A stretch of DNA of 50,399 bases from Pelomyxa schiedti. Lineage: Eukaryota > Protista > Evosea. The notes under the pieces are model-generated. The model saw only the letters and a program-made list of their open reading frames with translations. It was not told where the DNA came from and ran no database searches. Positions within the stretch are counted from its first letter, which is position 1. Each line of letters opens with the position of its first letter. Both the position numbers and the translations under genes were made by a program. The DNA is taken from NCBI GenBank assembly GCA_020536535.1, contig JAHLWZ010000388.1, positions 1-50,399 on the forward strand. Direction: 5' to 3'. Positions 1 to 44,860 of the stretch are shown one piece after another.

Positions 1-678
1 TGGGATTTTTGTGTACAGTGTAGTGTTGCATTTTTGGATTCAAACCGTGAGGTAACACACTGTGGTTGCAGAAGTTTGAGCACGAGAACCAGTCATATGA
101 TCCATCAAAGAGAATCCCATCCCACAAGAGAACCCCAGAAACGGAATTGCTTTTTGGGTTTCATACCTTGACAAGAAGAAGAGGAACAGGATTTGTTTTT
201 TTCGTCAGTATTCGTAGAAGTGCCCGTAGTAGGTCTCGAATATCAACGCGATGCAACCAACACAAACAACAATAGAGACAAAGAAACAATGGGTGGTTTG
301 GGTGTCACACTTCGTCTGGGAATCCGTCGTACCCCTTATGCTCCCCGACGCCGCTTCCCACTGCTTCTTCCCGACACCGTCTTGCACCCCTCCCCATTAT
401 CGTCATGGGCCCGCTCATGCCTCGTCGTCGTCCTCATCGACAACAACGATCGCCGCCGCAACCCATCATCCCACCACAGCCACAACACCGACGGAAGAGC
501 AGGAGGATGAGGAGGAGGACGACAACAACATGGGGATCGAGTATCACCGGATACCATCACTCAAGCGCAAGCACGTGGTCCCGCTGCTGCGTCTTGCCGA
601 GGCCCTGTTCCCCCTCGTTGGGCTCGTGTGCCGGGGCGTGAGGCGGTCGCGGGGCGCCAGGTCGTCGAGCCGCCGCCG
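1..678. repeat. Diverged segmental duplicate of 16252-16908 (junction behind the kinase remnant plus 5' part of the ankyrin-like gene)
   Basis: 1-118 matches 16252-16369 (tgggatttttgtgtacagtgtagtgttgcatttttgg...). Both copies encode MQPTQTTIETKKQWVVWVSHFVWESVVPLMLPDAASHCFFPTPSC. Small indels and substitutions separate them (PPHYRHG vs PPHYYRHG). Confidence 0.95.
251..678 (+). CDS. 5' portion of an ankyrin-like repeat protein gene (paralog of 16476-18973), cut off by the scaffold gap
   Basis: ORF 251..784 is nearly identical to the first ~145 aa of ORF 16476..18731 and runs into the N gap at 679. Confidence 0.8.
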
Positions 679-778
679 NNNNNNNNNNNNNNNNNNNNNN
701 NNNNNNNNNNNNNNNNNNNNNNNNNNNNNNNNNNNNNNNNNNNNNNNNNNNNNNNNNNNNNNNNNNNNNNNNNNNNNN
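679..778. other. Scaffold gap (100 N)
   Basis: Run of 100 N; true size unknown. Confidence 1.
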
Positions 779-2181
779 TTCTAAGTACTGGGTGTGCTGT
801 GTCTCGATTTGCTCCTCTCTGGAAATTACCAAAAGCTGAAAAGGGGACTGCAAACAGTGCCGCACTAAGGGCCATTGAGAGGGTTCGGCCTGTCATTTAT
901 AGAGAGTTACATGACTACTGGATGAAGAGACCTTTCAACCACATCCCCAAGCCAGTCACTGAAGACAAGTTCGGTTTTATTGCAGTAATTGCTGACCACC
1001 CATAATAATAAATAAGCCATATGCACTGAAGACCCCCACCAGTGATGCATTCATCCACCAGGTGAAAGCCTATGATAAACATCATGGCTTTCACACTGTA
1101 AAAAAACATGTGGTGGTCTCAGCTACGGCACCACATTACTGTGTGGCCATTGGAAAAGCCTGTGCAGGTGCCACAAGTGATAAGACCGATTTTGATGACC
1201 TGTGGAGTTCTCTGTATCCTCCTTTACTGAAGAGAAAGCCAGATGATACTTCTTTCCCAGAGCATGCTACCTGGGCAGTTCTTCTTGATAGTGGATATAT
1301 TGGGGCTAGCCGTCTTCCAAAGTATCACTGTCACTTACTTTTTTTTTCCCCGTTTTAATCCATCTCAGTGTGCATAAAGTTGTACTGCCTCGGCCCTCCA
1401 GCCACTCAAGCCACTATAGCCAGAAAGACCTTGACGATCTCCGCAAGAAAAGGTCTGTCAACCTGTTGTCAGTTTTCTTACTTTCACACAGAGTTTGTGT
1501 GGAATGCTTTTTTGGTAGGATGACTGTACTATGGCGTATCTTGCTTGTGCCCTATCCTTTTGACCAGCAGCATTTGGATGTGGATGTAGACATTATGATA
1601 ATGCTCACTAATGCTCACATAGAGTAAGAAGCTGTTTTACACAACTGTGATTTACAATTCTCACCAGGGAACGTGACTTGCATTCTGGGGACCAGAACTC
1701 CTATGTTAGGATTTGCAAACTCCGGGAGAAAGAAGCTGCAGATGTAAGACACAAACGTCAGCAGCAGCGAGACAGTTCAATGGACTCTGCCAGTAAGAGG
1801 CCCAATCTCAGCAAACAGTATGAAACAAATGAACCACAACGATCCCCACCTTCTCCGTCACCACTTCAGTCATTGCAATCGCAACCGCAGCCGCAATCGC
1901 AGCCGCAATCGCAATCACAACCACAACCACAATCGCCATTGCAGTTGCAATCTCAATCGCAATCACCATCGCAATCTCAGTCACAATCGCAACCACAACG
2001 CATTCACCGTCGCGGCCACAGGCGCCACCACATCCACAACCACAGCCACAACCACAACTCCAATCCCAATCGCAATTGCCGGCCCAGCCACAAACCAATC
2101 CCTAGAGGCAGACACAACCACAACCACACAATCACCTGTGCCACAAGTCATACCCTTACACAAATAACCACATACTCATGA
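779..2181 (+). mobile_element. Intron-containing DDE transposase-like gene (DDE_Tnp_4, PIF/Harbinger-related), 5' end lost in the gap, probably degenerate
   Basis: Motifs VIAD(H), WAVLLDSGYIG and RVCVECFFGRMTVLWRIL...MLTNAH fit the D-D-E triad of DDE_Tnp_4 nucleases. GT-AG introns at 1322-1368, 1453-1491 and ~1624-1667 join ORFs 1062..1358, 1370..1627 and 1678..2181 in frame (RLP-N-VHK; LRKK-R-VCVE; HIE-ERDL). The frame is broken just after ADH (TAA TAA TAA at ~1003-1011). Confidence 0.72.
1860..2135 (+). repeat. Hexamer-based low-complexity repeat (CAATCG/CAACCA/CAGCCG) encoding an S/Q/P- and H/N-rich transposase tail
   Basis: Directly visible tandem hexamers; translation QSQPQPQSQPQSQSQ... 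in ORF 1678..2181. Confidence 0.9.
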
Positions 2182-3293
2182 AGATGTCTTCCCCCAGTGT
2201 AGATCAGATTGCATTCATACAACAACCCTCCAATCCCCACAACTCTTCAAACAGCACGCACAACCCTGTTTATAGTTTTCAATGAAATTTCTTTCACAGT
2301 GATATTTCAAGGAAATCTTGACATTCACTGCGCAAAGCAAAAGGTAAACCGGTTTGCATTTTCAATCCGGATCCTCTGGCAGATCCGGATAAGGACGCAG
2401 ATTCGCAGTGCATTTTCAAAGCGAATCACCCCCCCAAAATCACAGCCTGGGGGGAGTAAACCGGACACCCCCCGGTAATCCGTTTTTGGTCCAATACAAA
2501 GATATGTGAGTGGTGTCCCTGACGGGGACGAACACGTTTGTAGCGAGATAAGGAGGGAACAAAGTCTTTATTTATTTTAATTGATCTGGTGGAGTCTGTG
2601 GTGAAAGTGGTGTTGCTTATAAACCCTGTCTCCCAGTAATTCCAGGTATTCAGTGGACCCACGCACCCGTGATAAGCTTTTAAACGCTTTAGAATCCGTT
2701 TTGAATAGCTTTTGAATCCGTTTTCAATCCCTTTTCAACTCTGTGCTTCCTTTCGTTTGGGGCAGAACTTGCTTCTGTGCAGCCGAAGTTTTGCATTAAA
2801 AACAAAAAAACTTGCAGGCAGTGTCGACAGATGGTGCTGTGACGGTGACCAGTGGGGGCAAACTCCGCGGGCAGTGGTAACGATAAATGACCAAGCCCTT
2901 CGGCAGTGGTCAACAGTGGAGTCCAACGATGACGGCAGTCAACAATGTGAGGTCTGCGGCAATCGTGGTCAACATTGGGAGCTCTTATCAGGTTTGCCAC
3001 TTTCTTTCATTTTTTGGTATCTATTTATCAGGGAAACATGGTGCCTTTCATTGTTACAAAATGCCAGGCTTTCCCACCGTTCTTTGCAAGGCAAAATAAC
3101 ATCCAGAAGGTGTGATGGGACTGCAATATACAATGCTGAGGTACATCACAGGGATACACCATCGCTAGGTTCAGAATTGACCAGTGATTTGGTGGTTTGT
3201 AGCATTCCCGCGTTTAATAAAACACTTGCTGGGTGTTGTACATATGATCCTCATGATTGCTGCACTAATCTCATTGCAGAGTGCACGCTGGTA

Positions 3294-4150: not shown

Positions 4151-4739
4151 TTACTCCGAACCACCTGAACTATCCCACACCAGCCCAACTATATCAGGCT
4201 ATGCACATACACCCGCGCAAGCACAGTCCACCCCACGTTTGCGTTCAGAGAGGGAGTGGGCTGATGTCTCATGAAGGAACAGAGCAGAGAGAGAAGGCTA
4301 GTCAAGTGGGAGGGGCTGGGAGATAGAATGTCCGGCAGCAGCCTTGAGGATTACTGTGCAAGAACGGGAGTGGGGGGAGGGGGGGAGAGGGCTCGTCAAC
4401 CGAATCACTGAGTACCACATTGTCACTCCAGTTTATTATGATTACTCCAGTTCAGCTCGATACTCTCCGATTACCCCGGCTTACTCTAACTTACTCGGTT
4501 TACCTTTGAGGACCCCCTTGATACCCAGAGAGCGTTTAAGAGAAGGAGGGAATGTGTGGGGTCCCACCCAACCCAGTGACCAATCACAGTCGAGGTCACC
4601 CAACCTGGAACTGGGCTCAGGCCTCTGATCTCCCATCACACTGACGTCACCATCACTCCAAGCACGAATCACACACAACACAGACGATAACGAGAATCTC
4701 TTATCCTTTCGTACGATCGGTTCGTGGTCCTGCAGGGTA

Positions 4740-4986
4740 CCGTATGTTGGGAAACCTTCGTTCCAGACTTTCGTTGCCGAAAACTTCCATTGTCGAAAAC
4801 TTTTGTTGCCGAAAACGTGCGTCGGTAAAAAAGTTCGTTCCGGCACCTAAAACCACGACACTTGATAGTCTGCGAAAATGATCGTCGCCGAAAACTTTCG
4901 TTGGGTGCTGTGGGCTACGAAAAATTTGGGCAACGAAAGTTTTCGGCGACGAAAGTTTGTTGGAACGAAGGTTTCTCAACATACGG
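4740..4986. mobile_element. MITE, 247 bp, Tc1/mariner(pogo)-like ends with a TA target-site duplication
   Basis: TIRs CCGTATGTTG(G/A)GAAACCTTCGTTCCA match 25/26. TA lies immediately outside both ends (4738-4739, 4987-4988). Internal ~16-bp subterminal repeats (ACTTTCGTTGCCGAAA-like) occur in both orientations. No coding capacity. Confidence 0.88.
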
Positions 4987-5176
4987 TACAGTACACCCCT
5001 TCATCCCTACAGAGGCAAGTTCTTTTGGAACATGGGGAACAACAAGTGTATCCAGTTGTCTTGACTTCTCAATAATAATGCCTATTGTTTGATTGTGAAA
5101 AATACTGTAGTGTGCTTCTTAGATACTTGTTTTATCGCAAACAAAAACCTACACTCTCAATTTTCGTCATTAGATA

Positions 5177-8100
5177 CTATACCCAATTCATGCTGAGTAT
5201 CTGGGACATTGTGGGACGGGCGTTGGGATCACTGGCCCAGCAATTCACCACGATGGTCTTGGCCCAACTGGGTAGTTCCGGTGCCGGCGGTGATTTCGGC
5301 AATTGTGGGAGTATCTTGCCGAGCGCCAGGTCCCGCACAATGTCTGAGGGTCTCATGGTAGCCTGCCGGTTTCTGTGAACCCGGAAGTATGCTGAGTAGG
5401 CCTCGAGGTGGCTGAATGGCGAACTTATGGGATCCATCAGCTTGAATACCACGGTGGCTGTATTTTATTAGTAGGACCGGCAAAATGGGGTACTTACCAA
5501 AGCTCCAAACATCAGCCTTCGTGTCATACTTTTCACCATTGAGAACTTCGGGAGCATAAATTTCCAACACTGGCGCATCTCCAGCGGTGCCTCGCTGCGA
5601 CTGCGATGCATCAGAATACAGAACTTGAGACAGCCCGAAATCGGCAATCTGTTGGGTGATAAGTGATTTGTGGGACAAGGAGAGGATTGCAACCCAACCT
5701 TTGCCCAAGGGCCTGGCCCAGTTTCGTCCAATGAGGAAATGAAAATGTTCCCTGTGGTGGTGATATATTAATACTCTCTCTCTGCCGCGGAAGTTAAAGA
5801 AGACGCGAACCTGTGTGGAGATCACCGTGAACGATTGGGGGAGTCTGTGAGTGCAAATGTTCCAACCCACGTGCAACATCTTTCAGAATTTTCACTTTCA
5901 TGGTCATGGGAATGATTCTATCCAAAAGCTGGGTGGTGTTTTCACCTTTTTCAAGGCACACCCGGATGAGATCGCTCAACTCAGGCTTCTTGATTTTTGT
6001 GTCTTCCAAGATTTTAATGAGAGGAGGAACAATGGGAACGACGAGTTCCGTGACCAACCACAGGTGTGGGTGAAGGCACGCACCATAGAACTTGACAACA
6101 TTTGGATGTGAAGATACCACATTTAAAACTGACATCTCAAAGATAAATCGTGCGATGGATTGATATGTGAGTTCCCCCAACGGTTGTTTTACAGCAACAG
6201 GCAAGCCCTTCCGTGTTGCCCTCATCACTTGCCCAAACCCACCTTTGCCCACTGGTGTTTGGGATTGAAACTCGATTTCAGTTGGATCGATCACAGGCAG
6301 GTGTTCAAGGAGTATGTCTGGTGCAACTTCCGTAAGCTTCACGTCAACTTGCTCTGTCTGATTGTCTGGTGGGCAACGAAGACATTTCATCCCATATCGT
6401 GCAGCATCAAGCACAACTCTTTGCGGGAAACATGTGATGTTGGGTGGAACGCTGAACACCGGCAGCTGCACAGCAGGTTCCAAGGAGGTTGGGGTGGCAG
6501 ATTGATGCAGGAAGCGAAGCAAACAGTGAGGGCAGGGGAAAGACACATCTGCATTCGCTGCAAGGCCAATGTAATAGGACTCGATGAATTGAGTGATCAA
6601 AGTGGTTACATAAATTATCAAGCTCTTCCTTTTCCACAGTGCCGTTTCTTCTTTGCTTGTGACTGTTGGTTCAGATCCAAGAGATGGATCAGGTGCCTCC
6701 TCAATTGTGGTTCGCATGCAAATGTTGATTGTGTGTTGCTTGGCCTCGTGTGTCATAATCAACTTCTGCTTTGTGATGGAGGAGGATGTTGAATCTTGAA
6801 AACTGAGATTCTCAACGATAAGACCTTCGTTCCATGAAAACAGAGGGGCAGTTTCTGGAATTCCAAGCACCATCACCATCAACCTTGGGAAAAACCCGAT
6901 CGGGAGAAAGCGGAACTTGAGTATTCTCCCACTCATGACGACCTTGGTGCCTGCCCCAGTGGGTGCGGTCCAAAATGAGGCCGCTTCTGCACTTCCCTCA
7001 GAATAGCGAAGCGCCAGGTCCGGGAGAAGGGAAGGAACTAGTAGCCGGCCATCAGGCAGGGTGAACAGGATTTCAAAAGTCTGAAGCAGCTCAATAAGGG
7101 TAGCATGGTGTTCAGGGTAAAAAGAAGAAAAAACATGACGGATAGACTGGGGGAGCACGAAACCATATGTGACCCAGCTAGTTGTTCGTATGCCGATTAC
7201 TGATGTCATCACCTTGGAGAGGTATGAAGGTTTCAGCACAATCAACTCAGAAAGAGGGATTCCCGTTTTTTTCTTCAGTGAACATACTTGATTTTCAGAA
7301 GATGTGTTGTGTAATTTGTGTCTGAAATGTATGATACTCCCTGCATCCAAAAGGAAGTCAGAGCACATGGTAATTTCTCGTTGCTCGTAACCATCACACT
7401 TCCCAACACCCTTAGCTTTTGCAATTGCAACATATTCATCCCAATGTAATGTCTCAGCCAGCATACTGGCGAGATGCTTGTGCAATTCAACCCAGTTCGA
7501 GGGGACATCAATCTTCTGTTGTTTTGCAATTTCCTCCAATCTCTCAGAAACACGCTCCACAGCAGTCATGGATACACAACTGGCCTCTGTTTCAGTGTTC
7601 ATGATAATACCATCACCAGTGGCCACACTCAATCCAAAAACACTGTCAAACTGCTTGTCATGAGCTCTCATAATCTGGGCCAAAGCAGCACAGGCAGATT
7701 TGGTTGTGGTTTTGTCAAGGTGCGTTCCAACCAGAAGGATGTGAACCTTCTCACTGTGGCCTGTGGTGTCTGTTCTGTTTGAAGTTGCTTGCCTGAATGA
7801 CAGGTTTATCTGATCAACCCAATACTTGATCTTTGGTGGAAGTATCACAGATTCAGATTCACCATCCCATTGAACAAGTGCCAAATCGAAAATTAGCAGG
7901 AACACGGAGCTGCTGCGCAAGAAGAACTGGTGTGTTGGGTAAAGCACATCTTGACCTCCTGCAGTTTGCGTTACTCAATTAAAGAGTGGAAACGAGTGGT
8001 GGGGCAAACACACCCAAGTCCCAGGCAACCCACGTGTGACCACTGCGTCTGTTCAACTTGAATGGCAGAGTAAAAGAAATACCATCAGTGGCCATGTTTT

Positions 8101-11100
8101 TTTTCACATTGGTTGTGTTCCTGCGCTCCGTCAGGCACCTCAGCAGTGTTGTTTTTCCAACGGCACCATCACCCACCACAAGAAGCTTGTGACGCTTCCA
8201 CGCAACAGGCTCACCACTGTACATTACAGACTGTTTCAGAGTGTTCCATTTCTCCGCTCTGGACCGGCTTGGGATTGTGTCCTGTGGATTTTCCACCAGA
8301 TACATGCTGAGTATCTGGGACATTGTGGGACGAGCACGTGGGTCGCGGACCCAGCAGTTCTCCAAAATGGTCTTGGCCCAACTGGGTACTTCTGGTGCCG
8401 GTGGAGATTTTGGCAATCGTGGGAGTATCTTTCCAAACCCCAGGTCCCGCGAAATTTCTACAAAGTTGAGAACAGCCTTGTGGTGCTTTTGAATTCGGCA
8501 GTATGTGGGGTCGGCCTCAAGGTGGCTGAAGGGGGAACTTATGGGATCAACCAGGTTGAAAACAGTCATTGCTGTAGTTGTTTTGGTTTTGTTGTAAGAG
8601 TGGGAGGAATGATGGATGAAGAAGTGTTTACCAAAACTCCAAACATCAGCCTTCGTGTCATACTTTTCACCGTTGAGAACTTCAGGACCATAGGTGAAGA
8701 CCTTGCCCTCTAATGAGCTTCTCGTGGACTTAGATTCTCCGGAATATAGAACTTGAGACAACCCGAAATCGGCAATCTGTTGGATGATAAGTGATTTGTG
8801 GGACAAGGAGAGGAGTTGCGAGTCAACCTTTGCCCAAGGGCCTGGCCCAGTTTCGTCCAATGAGGAAATGAAAATGTTCCCTGTGGTGTGATATATTAAT
8901 ACTCTCTCTGCCACTGAAGTTAAAGAAGACGTGAACCTGTGTGGAGATCGCCGTGGACGATGGGGGGATTCTGTGAGTGCAAATATTCCAAGCCACGTGC
9001 AACATCTTTCAGAATTTTCACCCTCATGGTCATGGGAATGATTCTATCCAAAAGCTGGGTGGTGTTTTCACCTTTTTCAAGGCACACCTGGATCCAACCC
9101 TGCAAGTCCGGCTTCTTGATTTTTGTGTCTCCCAGGATTGTCATGATACTTGGGGGAACAATGGTAACGACGAGTTCCATTACCAACCACAGGTGTGGGT
9201 GAAGGCATGCGCCATAGAACTTGACAACATTTGGATGTGAAGATACCACATTCAGAAGGGTTGTCTCAAAGATAAATTGTGTGATGGATTGATATGTGAG
9301 TTCCCCCAACGGTTGTTTTACAGCAACAGGCAAACCCTTCCGCGTTGCCCTCAACACTTGCCCAAACCCACCTTTGCCCACCGGTGTTTGGGATTGAAAC
9401 TCGATTTCAGTTGGATCGATCACAGGCAGGTGTTCAAGGAGTATGTCTGGTGCAACTTCCGTAAGCTTCACGTCAACTTGCTCTGTCTGATTGTCTGGTG
9501 GGCAACGAAGACATTTCATCCCATATCGTGCAGCATCAAGCACGACTCGTTGCGGGAAACGTGTGATGTCGGGTGGAACGCTGAACACCGAGGAGGTTGG
9601 GGTGGCAGATTGATGCAGGAAGCGAAGCAAACAATGAGAGCAAGGGAAAGATACATCTGCATTCGCTGCGAGGCCAATGTAATAGGACTCGATGAATTGA
9701 GTGATCAAAGTGGTTACATAAATTATCAAGCTCTTCCTTTTCCACAGTGCCGTTTCTTCTTTGCTTGTGATGGTTGGTTCAGATCCAAGAGATGGATCAG
9801 GTGCCTCCTCGATTGTGGTTCGCATGCAAATGTTGATTGTGTGTTGCTTGGCCTCGTGTGTCATAAACAACTTCTGCTTTGTGATGGACGAGGATGCTGA
9901 ATCTTGGATACTGAGATTCTCAACGATAAGACCTTCGTTCCATGCAAACAGAGGGGCAGTTTCTGGAATTCCAAGCACCATCACCATCAACCTTGGGAAA
10001 AACCCGATCGGGAGAAATCTGAACTTGAGTATTCGCCCGCTCATGACGACCTTGGTGCCTGTCCCAGTGGGTGCGGTCCAAAATGAGGCCGCTTCTGCAC
10101 TTCCCTCAGAATAGCGAGGCGCCAGGTCCGGGAGAAGGGAAGGAACTAGTAGCCGGCCATCAGGCAGGGTGAACAGGATTTCAAAAGTCTGAAGCAGCTC
10201 AATAAGGGTGGTGTACTGCTCGGGGGGAAACTCCTCAAAAACATGGTGAATTTTCTTCTGTTCCACAAATCCGTTTGTGAACCAAGTTGTTGTCTTGATA
10301 CTAATGACAGATGTCATCACCTTGGAGAGGTATGAAGGTTTCAGCACAATCAACTCAGAAAGAGGGATTCCTGTTTCCTTTCTTTTCCGCCAGCAGCTTG
10401 ATTTTCGAGAAGATGTGTATAATTGATTGCTGTGCCTGAAATGTATGATGCTCCCTGCATCCAAAAGGAAGTCAGAGCACATGGTAATTTCTCGTTGCTC
10501 TGTGGTATCATACTTCCCAACACCCTTAGCTTTTGCAATTGCAACATATTCATCCCAATGTAATGTGTCAGCCGACATGCTGGCGAGATGTTTGTGCAAT
10601 TTAACCCAGTTCGAGGTGACGGCAATCTTCTGTTGTTTTGCAATTTCCTCCAATCTCTCAGAAACACGCTCCACAGCAGTCATGGATACACAACTGGCCT
10701 CTGTTTCAGTGTTCATGATAATACCATCACCAGTGGCCACACTCAATCCAAAAACACTGTCAAACTGCTTGTCATGAGCTCTCATAATCTGGGCCAAAGC
10801 AGCACAGGCAGATTTGGTTGTGGTTTTGTCAAGGTGCGTTCCAACCAGAAGGATGTGAACCTTCTCACTGTGGCCTGTGGTGTCTGTTCTGTTTGAAGTT
10901 GCTTGCCTGAATGACAGGTTTATCTGATCAACCCAATACTTGATCTTTGGTGGAAGTATCACAGATTCAGATTCACCATCCCATTGAACAAGTGCCAAAT
11001 CGAAAATTAGCAGGAACACGGAGCTGCTGCGCAAGAAGAACTGGTGTGTTGGGTAAAGCACATCTTGACCTCCTGCAGTTTGCGTTACTCAATTAAAGAG

Positions 11101-14100
11101 TGGAAACGAGTGGTGGGGCAAACACACCCAAGTCCCAGGCAACCCACGTGTGTTCGCTGAGGCTGTTCAACTTGAATGGTGGAGGGATAGAAACTCCATC
11201 AGTGGCCATGTTTCTTGTCACATCGGTTGTGTTCATGTTCTTCCTCAGGCACCTCAGCAGTGTTGTTTTTCCAGCAGCACCATCACCCACCACAAGAAGC
11301 TTGTGACTCTTCCACTCAACAGGCTCGCAATTGTGCATTACAAACTGCTTCATTGTGTCCCATTTCTCAACCCTGAACCTGTCTGGGATTGTGTCCAGAG
11401 GATTTTCCATCAGATTGACAAATTTGACCTTGTGCAGCCACTGTGGAAGTGCACTCAGTTGGTTAAAGGACAGGTCAAGTGACTTGCAGCAAGCCACACA
11501 CTTCAAACTTGGGTGAATAGAGGGCAAATTGAGGAAGGACAGGTCCACGTCTTGATGTGACAATGCTCCAGAAAGACCAACTTCCTTCACTGCATTCCAG
11601 TTGTGGGCCTGAACCCACATTCGAAACAACCTTGAGACAACTGCCAGCAGTTTAAAACCTGGCTTCAAGTTCAATAAAATATCAAGCAGTTGGCGCACTG
11701 CAGTTGGTCCCATGTCCCTCACATTGACACCATTTTTGAAAATCAATGATTCCACAATCTCTCGGAATTTGGTGGAATTAGAAGCTGTGAGTAAGGCAAC
11801 TTTCAGAACTTCTACACATGAACCCTCATCCTTTAACACTGTTGGCACGTTTACGTGCAGGAGTGAGCGAATTCCAGTTGAGGGCTCTAACTGAATGCCT
11901 TCTTTGAGGGAGCTCCCCACCATTTCTCCTGAGCTGGAGGCAATGGCCAACATGGCATCAACGGTGTCTTCTGCTTGCCTTGCCCAAATTGGGAGATACT
12001 GTTGCACAGCATTCAACACAATGTCCAGTTTTGTGCTGTCACCCACTGCAACACAACTCCGCATCGCTTTCTTGAAATTGGAGCGATCTCCCGAGTTGAG
12101 GTTGAATTCAGTGATCACTGAATTATAAAGAGAAATATTTTCACCAGTGAGATACCCAGGTCCATGGTTCTTCACTGTTGAAAAAGGAAGAACGAGAACA
12201 GTCGAGAGAGCCAAAGACAGTTAAAAAAAAAAAAAAGAGAACACCAACACACACAGATGGGAATGCAAAGGCTTTGGAGAATCTTGTTTCCTTCGTTTCC
12301 AGCAAGAATCGCTGAAATATTCAAGGTGAATATTGGAGATTACGACTTTGCAGGCGTCAAACAGGCAGGGGGTTTCGTACCTGTCCAATCTTGGACCACC
12401 TGATCCTCGTTTGTTGTTATTGTTGTGTCATAAATAACAGTCAATTTCTCGATCCTTCTGTTTCGCTTCAAAGCGGCAAAAACAGTGGAATCAATCCAAC
12501 TCCCTTTTTATTTCCAGTGTGAGTGTGTGGGGAAGAGAAAGAGAAAATTAAAAAGAAAAGGGAAAAGGACAAGTAAAAAGGACAAGAAAAGGGATACAAT
12601 GAAGTTGCAGTTCTGTGATGCTGAAGTTTGTTCCCAAGAGTGTAACAAACTGTTTGAAGTCCTTGTCCTCACATTTTGTGTTTCCTTTTTGAGAATGAGG
12701 AAGAAGAAACCAATGTAATATGATGGAAGAAGAGAAAGTGAAACTGGAAATGTCGAGTGATGAGAGTTGATCCATGAGCCTGAAAAGCCACTTCTCACTT
12801 CCTTGGGTCAGTGAATCTGGCAGTGGTTAGTGAGTGATACTCGGTGGGAGGAAGAAAGGGAAGGCTGGGGGAGAGAAGGCACTCTGGAGACTCAAACTGA
12901 AGTCATTCCTCTGGAAAGATTGAACAGCTTTGACAACGGCTTTTACAGCACGCTCTGAGAGCACAAAGTCTGCCACCATGGTTTTTGTTAATATTTCAAA
13001 GAATGGGTGTGGGAGAGCAAACCGGAGAGAGAGAGCGATTTCAAGGAAGTGCAAGAACTCAGGTGTGTTGATATTGCCTCTTCCAATTTTTCTTGTTCGA
13101 GTCGATTGAAACCTGTCAAGCACGAACAATCAATTGGTTTGGCTTGAATGTTTGGAAAAATCATGGGAGATGATACTGATTGAGGATCCAATTGCACAAT
13201 ACTGGAGTTCGGTGCATTGAAAAACGGAGGAGAGCAACTCATTGTCAGCCACAGTCAAACCTTTCAACATTTCAAGTAAATGCAAGCCCCCCAAATTTGC
13301 AGGTTTTTTTGTGGAAAATAGTTGAGTTGGTTCACACAAACTTTTCAAAGAAAACTTTGAGCAGATATCTCTTTGGTCAGATATAATCTTGGTCAGGACT
13401 TTGCAGTCACTGAAGCTGTAATAACCTTGATCTCAATTTTAGATGTGTGATGAGAAGTGGTTTTTTGAGTAATTAGCAGGGAGATGACGAAACCGATGTC
13501 AATCACGACTTCGCCATTTGCCTGACTGATGATACTTTGGCTGTCCCTTGTTGTCCACGAATATCGGAAACTTTCCGGCCCATTTGCCGCTGTATTTGAG
13601 CCTTTCTTTTAATACATGGATCGTGTCATTTGGGGATCTAACCTGGGTTTGGCTCAAACTGCGTTTTTGTGCTGAAACCACCGATTTTGGCACCTTTGTG
13701 TGCCTCCCTCAGTATGTCTGTGAGGGTTGTTGCACCTGTCCACTCGGTGATTGTATCGGCGCAAACCTAAAAAATAAATTAATTTATTGTACTCACCAGT
13801 GAACCAATTAAAAAAAAAAATAAATAAATAAAATCTCATAACGTGCATTGGGGACATATACCATCGAAGCCATGGCAAAGCACTCAAGCAACCCAATTGT
13901 TGCACAGGGAGCAAGTGAATGGGAAGCAGAATGGTCAGGATCGAAACCAGCAACAAAAAACAGGAATGGCTGATGTGTTGCCCTGTTTTTTGCCCACAAA
14001 CTCCCATAAAGTAATTCCAAAGTTTCAGGAATTGCATCAAAGAATGCACGATCATTTGGAGTGCAAACAACAAGAACAGCTTTCATTGTTCCCTGTGCAC

Positions 14101-14606: not shown

Positions 14607-14918
14607 GTGGTAAGTTGGTTTGAGTTATTTTGTAAGTTCGTTTCGACGCATCGCAACAGTTGCCGCTACATCTCTGTGATATCACCTTCATACGCGGTTC
14701 CCTGAAAACTGTGTTGATAGGAAAATAAGGCAAGAAATTTCATTGAAAACTGTTTAGTGTACGGGTCATCTGTTGGGGACAATTGGTGGTTTTTTGTCTT
14801 GAGGTGATTGGTTATTGTTGTTGTAGCTCCTCAGGGAAATGGGTGAGAACGAATGTTCTGGTTCCACATGGTTGATACCAACTAGTTGTCTTTTCAATGA
14901 AATCAAACCAGGAGGAAA

Positions 14919-15813
14919 ATGTCTGCAGCGGCACCCCAGCAGGTATGTCGTCTGCGTTTGTGCCCGGTTGTTTTATCCAAGTCTCAATTCCACAGCAGTG
15001 CACACTTTTTGAGGCAGAGCGCAATGTCATCAAAACACTGACTGCCTCTAATCCAATGAAAGCAGGGGAGATTTGGTTCCTCATCTCATCGACTTGGTTC
15101 AAGAGCTGGAAAAAATACGTATCATACTTTTACTTTCCCTCATGCTCATCTGGCTGGGGTGCTGTATGTTATTTGCACTTATTTCTTTGGTGGGGTTTGA
15201 ACCAGGGTTAGGCAACACCCAGACCAGGACCGATCCGAAATAGTGAGCTCCTTGGGGAAGACGGTGAGCTCAAACATTCCGTGTTGGAGCTGACACACTA
15301 TGAGGTGGTCAGTGGTGTTGTGTGGAATACACTGAAGGGATGGTATTCTGGTGGGCCTGACATCCCTCGTCCTGTGATTTCCTTCCTTGGTCTGTACGGA
15401 AATGTTTGTCTCTCAGTGGAGCTGCAGCCACTGAGACTGCACATTGTTAAATCATCTGATACAACGGCTTCTGTGTTGGCATACTTCAGCAGAATTGACA
15501 CTGTTGGTCATCTTAAGGTACACTTCAAGCATAAGCACAAGTATAATTGACACCAGAAAACAATGTGTGAGAGAATGGGATTGGAGCCAGACAACATCCA
15601 CGTGTGGGACTACCACGGCGGCTCTTGGCTCAAGAAGCTTCATGATACGCAAACTCTGCACTCTGAACAGATTATTAACAACCAAAAGGTACTTCGAACA
15701 ATACTATGTTTCTAGAAAATAATCCTTCCTTGCAGGTTATGCTGGCTGAAAAAAATGATGCTGGGCTTTGGCCAAGCCATGGACGAGTGTATTTTGGTGT
15801 TTCCAATAGCTAA
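14919..15813 (+). CDS. Stand-alone DUSP + Ubl domain protein (USP4/11/15-type N-terminus without a catalytic domain), copy 1
   Basis: Spliced product MSAAAPQQ..WFLISSTWFKSWKKY|ATPRPGPIRNSELL...HYEVVSGVVWNTLKGWYSGGPDIPRPVI...VELQPL (DUSP), then FSRIDTVGHLK|KTMCERMGLEPDNIHVWDY...|VMLAEKNDAGLWP (Ubl end motif), with a stop at 15811-15813. Confidence 0.8.
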
Positions 15814-15931: not shown

Positions 15932-16260
15932 GTGACATAGACAAGGACCAATCCATGCTGAGTATCTGGGTCACTGTGGGACGGGCACGTGGATCGCGGA
16001 CCCAGCAGTTCTCCAAAATGGACTTGGCCCAACTGGGTAGTTCACGTGCCGGCGGCGACGATTTCGGCAATTGTGGGAGTGTCTTGCCGAGCGCCAGGTC
16101 CGCGCAATGTCGGAGGGTATCATGATAGCCTGCCGGTTTTGATGAACTCGGAAGTACGCCGAGTCGGCCTCAAGGTGGCTGAACGGGATCCATCAGCTTG
16201 AACACCATCATTGCTGCGAAAGGGTTTTTAGTATTTTGATGAAGGGAAGAAGTGGGATTT
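15932..16260 (-). pseudogene. Remnant of the last Roco kinase exon and last intron (duplicate of 19112-19456)
   Basis: Aligns to the 3' end of Roco B (ENCWVRDPRARPTVTQILSMDWS). A ~10-bp deletion after LMDP shifts the frame. Homology stops at the intron donor (gtgggattt, 16260). Confidence 0.88.
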
Positions 16261-44760: not shown

Positions 44761-44860
44761 NNNNNNNNNNNNNNNNNNNNNNNNNNNNNNNNNNNNNNNN
44801 NNNNNNNNNNNNNNNNNNNNNNNNNNNNNNNNNNNNNNNNNNNNNNNNNNNNNNNNNNNN
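44761..44860. other. Scaffold gap (100 N)
   Basis: Run of 100 N between two ROC-COR segments. Confidence 1.

Follow-up and report, generated by a model that had tools for sequence, protein, structure and literature searches.

The coupling of dimerization to GTP turnover and kinase output in Roco proteins is a matter of debate, one that bears on LRRK2 and Parkinson's disease. A locus of the anaerobic archamoeba Pelomyxa schiedti (PMC8887013) raises the question of whether a single Roco chain can carry the whole Roc-COR-kinase core twice. The locus lies on contig JAHLWZ010000388.1 of assembly GCA_020536535.1, which we analyzed over its full 50,399 bp (hereafter, the window), and the gene in question, here called the double Roco, is deposited as KAH3763351.1. 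We asked (i) whether the doubled layout is real, (ii) whether both cores are maintained, and (iii) whether they would be made as one protein. The double-core architecture is real with high probability. We put the probability at roughly 0.65 that the gene would be transcribed and translated as a single chain, one polypeptide of ~2300-2700 residues with two active cores.

A 3114-bp unit is repeated head to tail in one reading frame

Comparison of the window with itself revealed a direct repeat, 8300-11415 against 5186-8301, at an offset of 3114 bp and with 88.9% identity over 3149 columns. On the minus strand this is a 3114-bp unit, consisting of pre-ROC linker, Roc, COR-A/B, and kinase, that stands twice head to tail (11414-8303 and 8302-5189). 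The two units have 88-89% DNA identity and 85% protein identity. The features of the gene are as follows, with Pfam scores in bits.

12979-5177, minus strand: coding sequence of the double Roco (KAH3763351.1), 2315 amino acids in 16 exons; the protein maps exactly after splicing
11414-8303, minus strand: module A, half leucine-rich repeat (LRR)/pre-ROC linker plus Roc-COR-kinase
11302-10918, minus strand: Roc of module A (G1 box 11287-11264), 43.3 bits
10614-10132, minus strand: COR-A of module A, 48.9 bits
10035-9664, minus strand: COR-B of module A, 16.1 bits, below threshold
9396-8306, minus strand: kinase of module A, 129.9 bits
8571-8014, minus strand: junction exon, 558 nt, encoding the end of the kinase A C-lobe, a 43-residue linker, and Roc-B to WDLG
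8302-8300, minus strand: junction codon TAT (Tyr1343), placed by three-way comparison, with the kinase A tail SQILSM upstream and the linker LVENPQDTIP downstream
8299-5180, minus strand: module B, linker plus Roc-COR-kinase with the native tail ..SQILSMNWV
8188-7804, minus strand: Roc of module B (G1 box 8173-8150), 47.9 bits
7503-7024, minus strand: COR-A of module B, 53.1 bits
6927-6517, minus strand: COR-B of module B, 18.3 bits, below threshold
6267-5180, minus strand: kinase of module B, 137.2 bits

A stop-free frame runs from the tail of kinase A (..RPTMSQILSM) through YLVENPQDTIP.. to a second G1 box, GDGAVGKT. The native gene end is kept in module B, where ..RPTMSQILSM is followed by NWV and the stop codon (5179-5177); after kinase A, both the native stop and the 3' flank are missing. 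The match to the kinase tail ends at the ATG of 8305-8303 and the match to the pre-ROC linker begins at (A/T)AT CTG, with the triplet AAT common to both parents. In the protein, the join falls in frame between residues 1342 and 1343. It lies 3 codons ahead of the native stop on one side and in the last LRR-like motif before Roc, VNLMENPLDTIP, on the other. An earlier, sequence-only reading of this DNA had given a junction at ~8300-8302, a 2-3 nt microhomology (AAT), and a period of 3114 bp, and each of these values is borne out by the comparisons above. It had also relied on an open reading frame at 7979-8914. This frame is indeed free of stops, but two in-frame introns interrupt it, one at 8827-8777 and one at 8631-8572. 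After splicing, the junction exon lies between introns 8631-8572 and 8013-7959.

We propose that the locus arose long ago, when an internal part of a Roco (LRRK2-like) kinase gene was duplicated in tandem and in frame. At AAT, a microhomology-mediated join would have connected the codon 3 positions ahead of the stop with the final LRR-like motif that precedes Roc, so that copy A lost its stop codon and 3' end. The resulting order is N-terminal region, [Roc-COR-kinase]A, 43-residue linker, [Roc-COR-kinase]B, and the two modules would then have exchanged sequence by gene conversion.

Both modules carry the domains and motifs of a Roco kinase

Two complete Roc-COR-kinase modules in one frame, as first claimed from the letters alone, are supported by Pfam domains and motifs in each half. 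Roc (PF08477, gathering threshold 27), COR-A (PF16095, gathering 35.3), and kinase (PF07714) score above gathering in both modules, and COR-B (PF25497, gathering 27) is found at the expected place with a sub-threshold score. The GTPase motifs GDGA(A/V)GKT, WDLGGQ, and GTHLD (general forms GxxxxGKT, DxxGQ, and THxD) are present in both, as are the kinase motifs GKGGFG (G-loop), VAVK, HGDLHTGN, DFG, and Y(G/A)PE. Judged by sequence, then, each module has the Roc followed by COR that marks the Roco family, and each has the trait of the LRRK/Roco4 group, a tyrosine kinase-like (TKL-like) kinase C-terminal of COR with its predicted catalytic residues. The closest solved structures are the Dictyostelium Roco4 kinase (4F0F, E 4e-26) and the Roc-COR of LRRK2 (6VNO/7LHT, E ~1e-23). 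The sequence-only reading had spoken of two different kinases. This holds in part: the C-lobes are 72% identical and differ in their activation loops, but none of the catalytic motifs checked differs between the two kinases.

The order Roc, COR-A, COR-B, TKL-like kinase is shared with single-core Roco kinases of the LRRK2/Roco4 type (LRR-Roc-COR-kinase), whereas the double Roco has the whole core twice in one chain. It also differs from them in having no WD40 after the kinase, the native protein ending 3 residues past the kinase domain, in its non-RD kinase (HGD), and in the absence of a Pfam LRR match upstream of Roc. Residues 1-393 gave no Pfam match of any kind, and the LRR-like motifs LDLSFNQLSALP.. 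and that at the join were recognized before Roc by eye.

The same junction is present in a diverged paralog

The junction is not unique to the double Roco. A second contig of the same assembly, JAHLWZ010001366.1 (7241 bp), has the same breakpoint in a diverged paralog, again in frame. Its annotated protein, KAH3731670.1, begins within a kinase tail (..RPTMTQLLSN-NLLDTKNPVAVYSGEPVEWKSHK..GDGGVGKT) and continues into a full Roc-COR-kinase. The DNA is colinear across the join with window positions 8459-5190 at ~72% identity, and the breakpoint reads AGC AxT / AAT CTx, as in the double Roco. The linker of KAH3731670.1 is 16 residues (48 nt) shorter than that of the double Roco, with the frame kept.

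This second contig also bears on another Roco gene of the window, paralog gene 4:

48748-41951, minus strand: gene 4, probably a second double Roco; N-terminus, Roc, and part of COR to 44862; gap at 44761-44860; Roc-COR-kinase at 44760-41951

The gap, a run of N, sits in this gene, with a partial module on one side and the beginning of a further module on the other. JAHLWZ010001366.1 is 95.6% identical to window positions 44760-39746 (90-96% to the sequence below the gap) and ends where the gap begins. Immediately upstream of where the window sequence resumes, it has a kinase tail fused in frame to a pre-ROC linker. The contig is either an allele or a very recent copy of the gene 4 sequence, carrying the missing junction. 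Because it ends at the gap, and because an N-terminus, a Roc, and part of a COR lie beyond the gap, gene 4 is probably a second double Roco with its middle hidden, a conclusion that depends on the scaffold join being correct. We also compared the ends of the two contigs at this gap for a common repeat that might account for the break in gene 4; nothing decisive emerged.

An artifactual join is highly improbable

We considered whether the join could be a chimera of multiple displacement amplification, or an assembly error in a repeated family, that stitched two single-core genes together. Chimeras from amplification can form where there are short microhomologies, and the Roco family here is repetitive, with a 530-bp identical tract inside the gene itself. 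The origin of the data counts against our reading as well: the DNA came from single cells and was whole-genome amplified with GenomiPhi, a method that makes chimeras, sequenced with Illumina and Nanopore, assembled with SPAdes --sc, and scaffolded by P_RNA_scaffolder with RNA read pairs (PMC8887013). Even so, we regard such an artifact as highly improbable. The same breakpoint recurs on a separate contig, where the sequence has diverged and has in-frame deletions of its own, which argues against an amplification chimera. Because the reads were pooled from several cells, each independently amplified (PMC8887013), a chance chimera should be outvoted in the consensus. Sequence common to the two sides of the join amounts to just 3 nt, and the flanks are 64-85% identical to their sister copies; hence no k-mer graph error could make the join. 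The linker of module B is not the same as any native linker of the window. A wrong path through the 530-bp repeat can neither make nor abolish the join and could alter only how many modules are assembled. A single path uses every piece one time, namely linker A, repeat, rest of A, join, linker B, repeat, rest of B; by mis-threading, module number could be underestimated but not overestimated. The window has only two runs of N (679-778 and 44761-44860), none of them within the double Roco repeat, and these 100-N gaps probably come from the RNA-based scaffolding step.

Both modules are under purifying selection

Amino acid identity between modules A and B varies by segment:

linker: 63%
Roc: 92%
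COR-A: 77%
COR-B: 96% (95.7%)
kinase N-lobe: 87%
kinase C-lobe: 72%, with different activation loops as noted above

DNA identity along the unit is likewise a mosaic, from 64% to 100%, and includes one long identical stretch:

10623-11152 (module A) = 7509-8038 (module B), minus strand: 530-bp tract, 100% identical

This tract takes in the last part of Roc exon 1, the whole 55-nt Roc intron, and then switch II of Roc, up to just short of COR-A. From its sequence, we take it to be the footprint of a recent gene conversion between the modules. Mosaic identity together with such a tract points to gene conversion between old copies, not to a young duplicate.

The ratio of nonsynonymous to synonymous substitution (dN/dS, or omega) between A and B, by the Nei-Gojobori method, was 0.41 (bootstrap 0.33-0.52). 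In the least-converted blocks, dS was 0.58 and omega was 0.39 (0.28-0.54). With paralog gene 2 as the outgroup, branch omega was 0.37 for A and 0.47 for B, near the 0.38 of the outgroup branch, which argues that neither core drifts neutrally. All five exonic indels between A and B are multiples of 3 (3, 3, 21, 3, and 6 nt), and none of the five intronic indels is (2, 1, 1, 10, and 10 nt); this pattern supports both the exon-intron model and coding constraint on the two modules. Modules A and B are both under purifying selection.

These values also bear on the idea that the gene is fused with one core redundant and on its way to becoming a pseudo-domain that serves as a scaffold only. In its favor, the overall omega is moderately relaxed, and branch omega is near or above 1 in small blocks (columns 1-120 for A, columns 241-420 for B). 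Against it, the catalytic motifs checked are all intact in the two cores, frameshifts and stops are absent from both despite dS of up to ~0.8 in some blocks, and the whole-module branch values match that of the single-core outgroup. We consider this decay improbable.

A tree of Roc-COR-A modules does not group A modules against B modules. The two modules of the double Roco (1A and 1B) pair with each other because of gene conversion, 4A joins this pair, and 4B clusters with genes 2 and 3. The tree is therefore unusable for dating the duplication, and we relied on the shared breakpoint instead.

One chain with two cores or single-core products

The duplication could be real without any two-core protein being made. 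Module B might be translated from an internal start, or splicing, for example from a donor at 11128 to an acceptor at 7958, might yield single-core isoforms; the tandem layout would then serve to choose between modules. In keeping with this, introns lie at homologous positions and phases in the two modules, and single-core paralogs of the same design lie next door. We favor one chain with two cores because kinase A has lost its own stop codon and 3' flank and because the frame across the join is kept in two paralogs that are ~72% identical, despite a 48-nt change in length; nothing would demand such conservation were the join never translated. With no stop or 3' flank after kinase A, transcripts from the gene's promoter would have nowhere obvious to end before module B. 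The introns of the double Roco model are 40-94 nt long, so that an intron of 3.1 kb would be out of character. Single-core products thus seem unlikely.

Several points weigh against the two-core chain. Core enzymes are under tighter constraint than an omega of 0.4 implies. The junction exon, used as a query (185 residues, against proteins of 102-324 amino acids), gave no match and no transcript-derived protein for the join, a result that is uninformative either way. Parts of the automatic gene model are inconsistent: module A is given a 45-nt intron that is doubtful, and the N-terminus is split off. Finally, kinase B requires the splicing of its third kinase intron (5497-5458), which at 40 nt is the shortest in the gene. 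It has two 10-nt deletions, and its counterparts are 60 nt long (module A) and 53 nt long (gene 2). The exon downstream of it is still constrained (omega 0.36).

The layout was found nowhere else in our searches

We searched the 713-residue Roc-COR-kinase exon with HMMER against 1.84 billion representative proteins and obtained 2910 matches at E <= 0.001. Our protein searches were broad though not exhaustive, the top matches being those inspected. Among the best 150 of the 2910 matches, none had two Roc-COR stretches and only a few had two kinases. When the best HMMER matches were pooled with those of a word-based search (proteins of 960-3054 amino acids), KAH3763351.1 was the only double one among the 194 proteins. 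Its kinase-join-Roc stretch, compared with proteins of 1273-4051 amino acids, was 100% covered by itself and at most 64% by any other. Our literature searches turned up no chain with a second Roc or Roc-COR unit; the passages returned all dealt with the paired protomers of a dimer. Roco proteins are not discussed in the P. schiedti genome paper, in which all three uses of "kinase" are metabolic (PMC8887013). GenBank thus contains the double-core layout without remark, and our searches recovered it from no other source. The sequence-only reading had known of no described example, and we found none; since the model, which already gives the fused reading, was deposited automatically under the name "leucinerich repeat kinase", the layout is undescribed rather than unseen.

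Other proteins with repeated catalytic domains offer partial parallels. Tandem GTPases or kinases occur in one chain in EngA/Der, GIMAP8, and Miro and in JAK, RSK/MSK, and plant tandem-kinase proteins. In some of these the copies pair or regulate each other, and in several one copy is a pseudo-enzyme; in contrast, both cores of the double Roco keep their motifs. None of them is known to carry a repeated unit that combines GTPase, COR, and kinase. In DAPK1, a single N-terminal kinase of the calcium/calmodulin-dependent (CaMK) type accompanies a single Roc-COR. As in the double Roco, its kinase lies upstream of Roc-COR in the same chain (PMC6337361); in the double Roco, this adjacency arises from the repeated Roc-COR-kinase block.

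A built-in dimer is a tentative possibility

Roco GTPases dimerize through COR-B and Roc, and in CtRoco and LRRK2, COR-mediated dimerization is coupled to GTP turnover (the type of G proteins activated by dimerization, GAD) (PMC6337361). By analogy, the two COR-B/Roc units of the double Roco might pair in cis as a built-in COR-mediated dimer whose kinases differ in their activation loops, the intramolecular pseudo-dimer that the sequence-only reading had suggested. We regard this as possible though doubtful. No finding of this analysis supports the idea directly; the one observation that bears on it is the conservation of COR-B, highest of all segments between the modules, which gene conversion explains equally well. 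More tentatively still, the protein might be a natural covalent Roco dimer in which the GTPase cycle and two distinct kinases would be regulated independently of protein concentration, the layout having been kept in at least two Pelomyxa paralogs since before their divergence to ~72% DNA identity.

If the two cores are made as one chain, both halves of the putative dimer, each with a kinase, would form a ready-made construct in which one core can be mutated without mixing protomers. The locus also illustrates a concrete route by which a signaling enzyme doubles its catalytic core: a single microhomology join before the stop, with similarity then kept by gene conversion. If they are never expressed as one chain, the locus would represent ordinary tandem gene-family turnover.

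Gene model and neighboring features

The P. schiedti annotation was produced with Augustus, PASA, and EVM (PMC8887013). The KAH3763351.1 model has 15 GT-AG introns, and per unit these lie at homologous positions: one in Roc (WDLG/GQDVLYP) and three in the C-terminal half of the kinase (HGDLHT/GNIF, PWAK/IADFG, and DVWSF/A..). A nearby paralog in the window, KAH3763356.1 (1638 amino acids, 25189-19128), has the same exon-intron plan and the same N-terminal region, with 60-94% protein identity by segment. Such neighboring paralogs have one core and end in ..SQILSM(D/N)W(S/V)-stop, the stop that the double gene lost at the join. The 45-nt "intron" of module A (10480-10436, minus strand) excises CSDFLLDAGSIIHFR, which is coding in module B and in KAH3763356.1, and is probably a false call. 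Upstream of the model lies a further region:

14606-12980, minus strand: probably further N-terminal exons of the double Roco, colinear with exons 1-8 of KAH3763356.1
14606-13393, minus strand: annotated as a separate 309-residue gene

All 8 upstream exons of KAH3763356.1 have colinear counterparts upstream of the double Roco, with AG/GT flanks kept. Because of this colinearity with the paralog's N-terminus and the conserved matching splice flanks, the 309-residue gene is probably a split-off 5' part of the double Roco gene. The start codon ATG of the paralog type is ATT at this locus, and the frame is open upstream of it into a low-complexity G/A/R/P-rich extension starting at the ATG of 14606. 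Given the excised CSDFLLDAGSIIHFR and the ~300 split-off N-terminal residues, the true protein is probably nearer 2,700 amino acids, an estimate.

Three plus-strand open reading frames under the region (8036-8713, 6160-6792, and 9277-9900) matched no Pfam family, and we read them as antisense noise rather than genes. Tandem Repeats Finder, with a longest period of 500, is blind to a 3.1-kb unit and reported only 16-bp repeats near 4767-4974. These form two tandem arrays (4767-4816 and 4913-4974) that make up an inverted repeat (4737-4989) ~200 bp past the stop of the double Roco. Farther downstream, an annotated 514-residue gene (338-3187, plus strand) has a weak match to the transposase family DDE_Tnp_4, and a transposon relic may adjoin the Roco cluster there.

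On the other side of the gene, an orphan kinase-tail fragment (15945-16216, minus strand; ..TQILSMDWS) has lost its stop and adjoins a copy of a DUSP-domain gene (14884-15778). The pair looks like a relic of a segmental duplication that brought only a Roco 3' end. The same pairing of kinase tail and DUSP is found after gene 4 and on JAHLWZ010001366.1.

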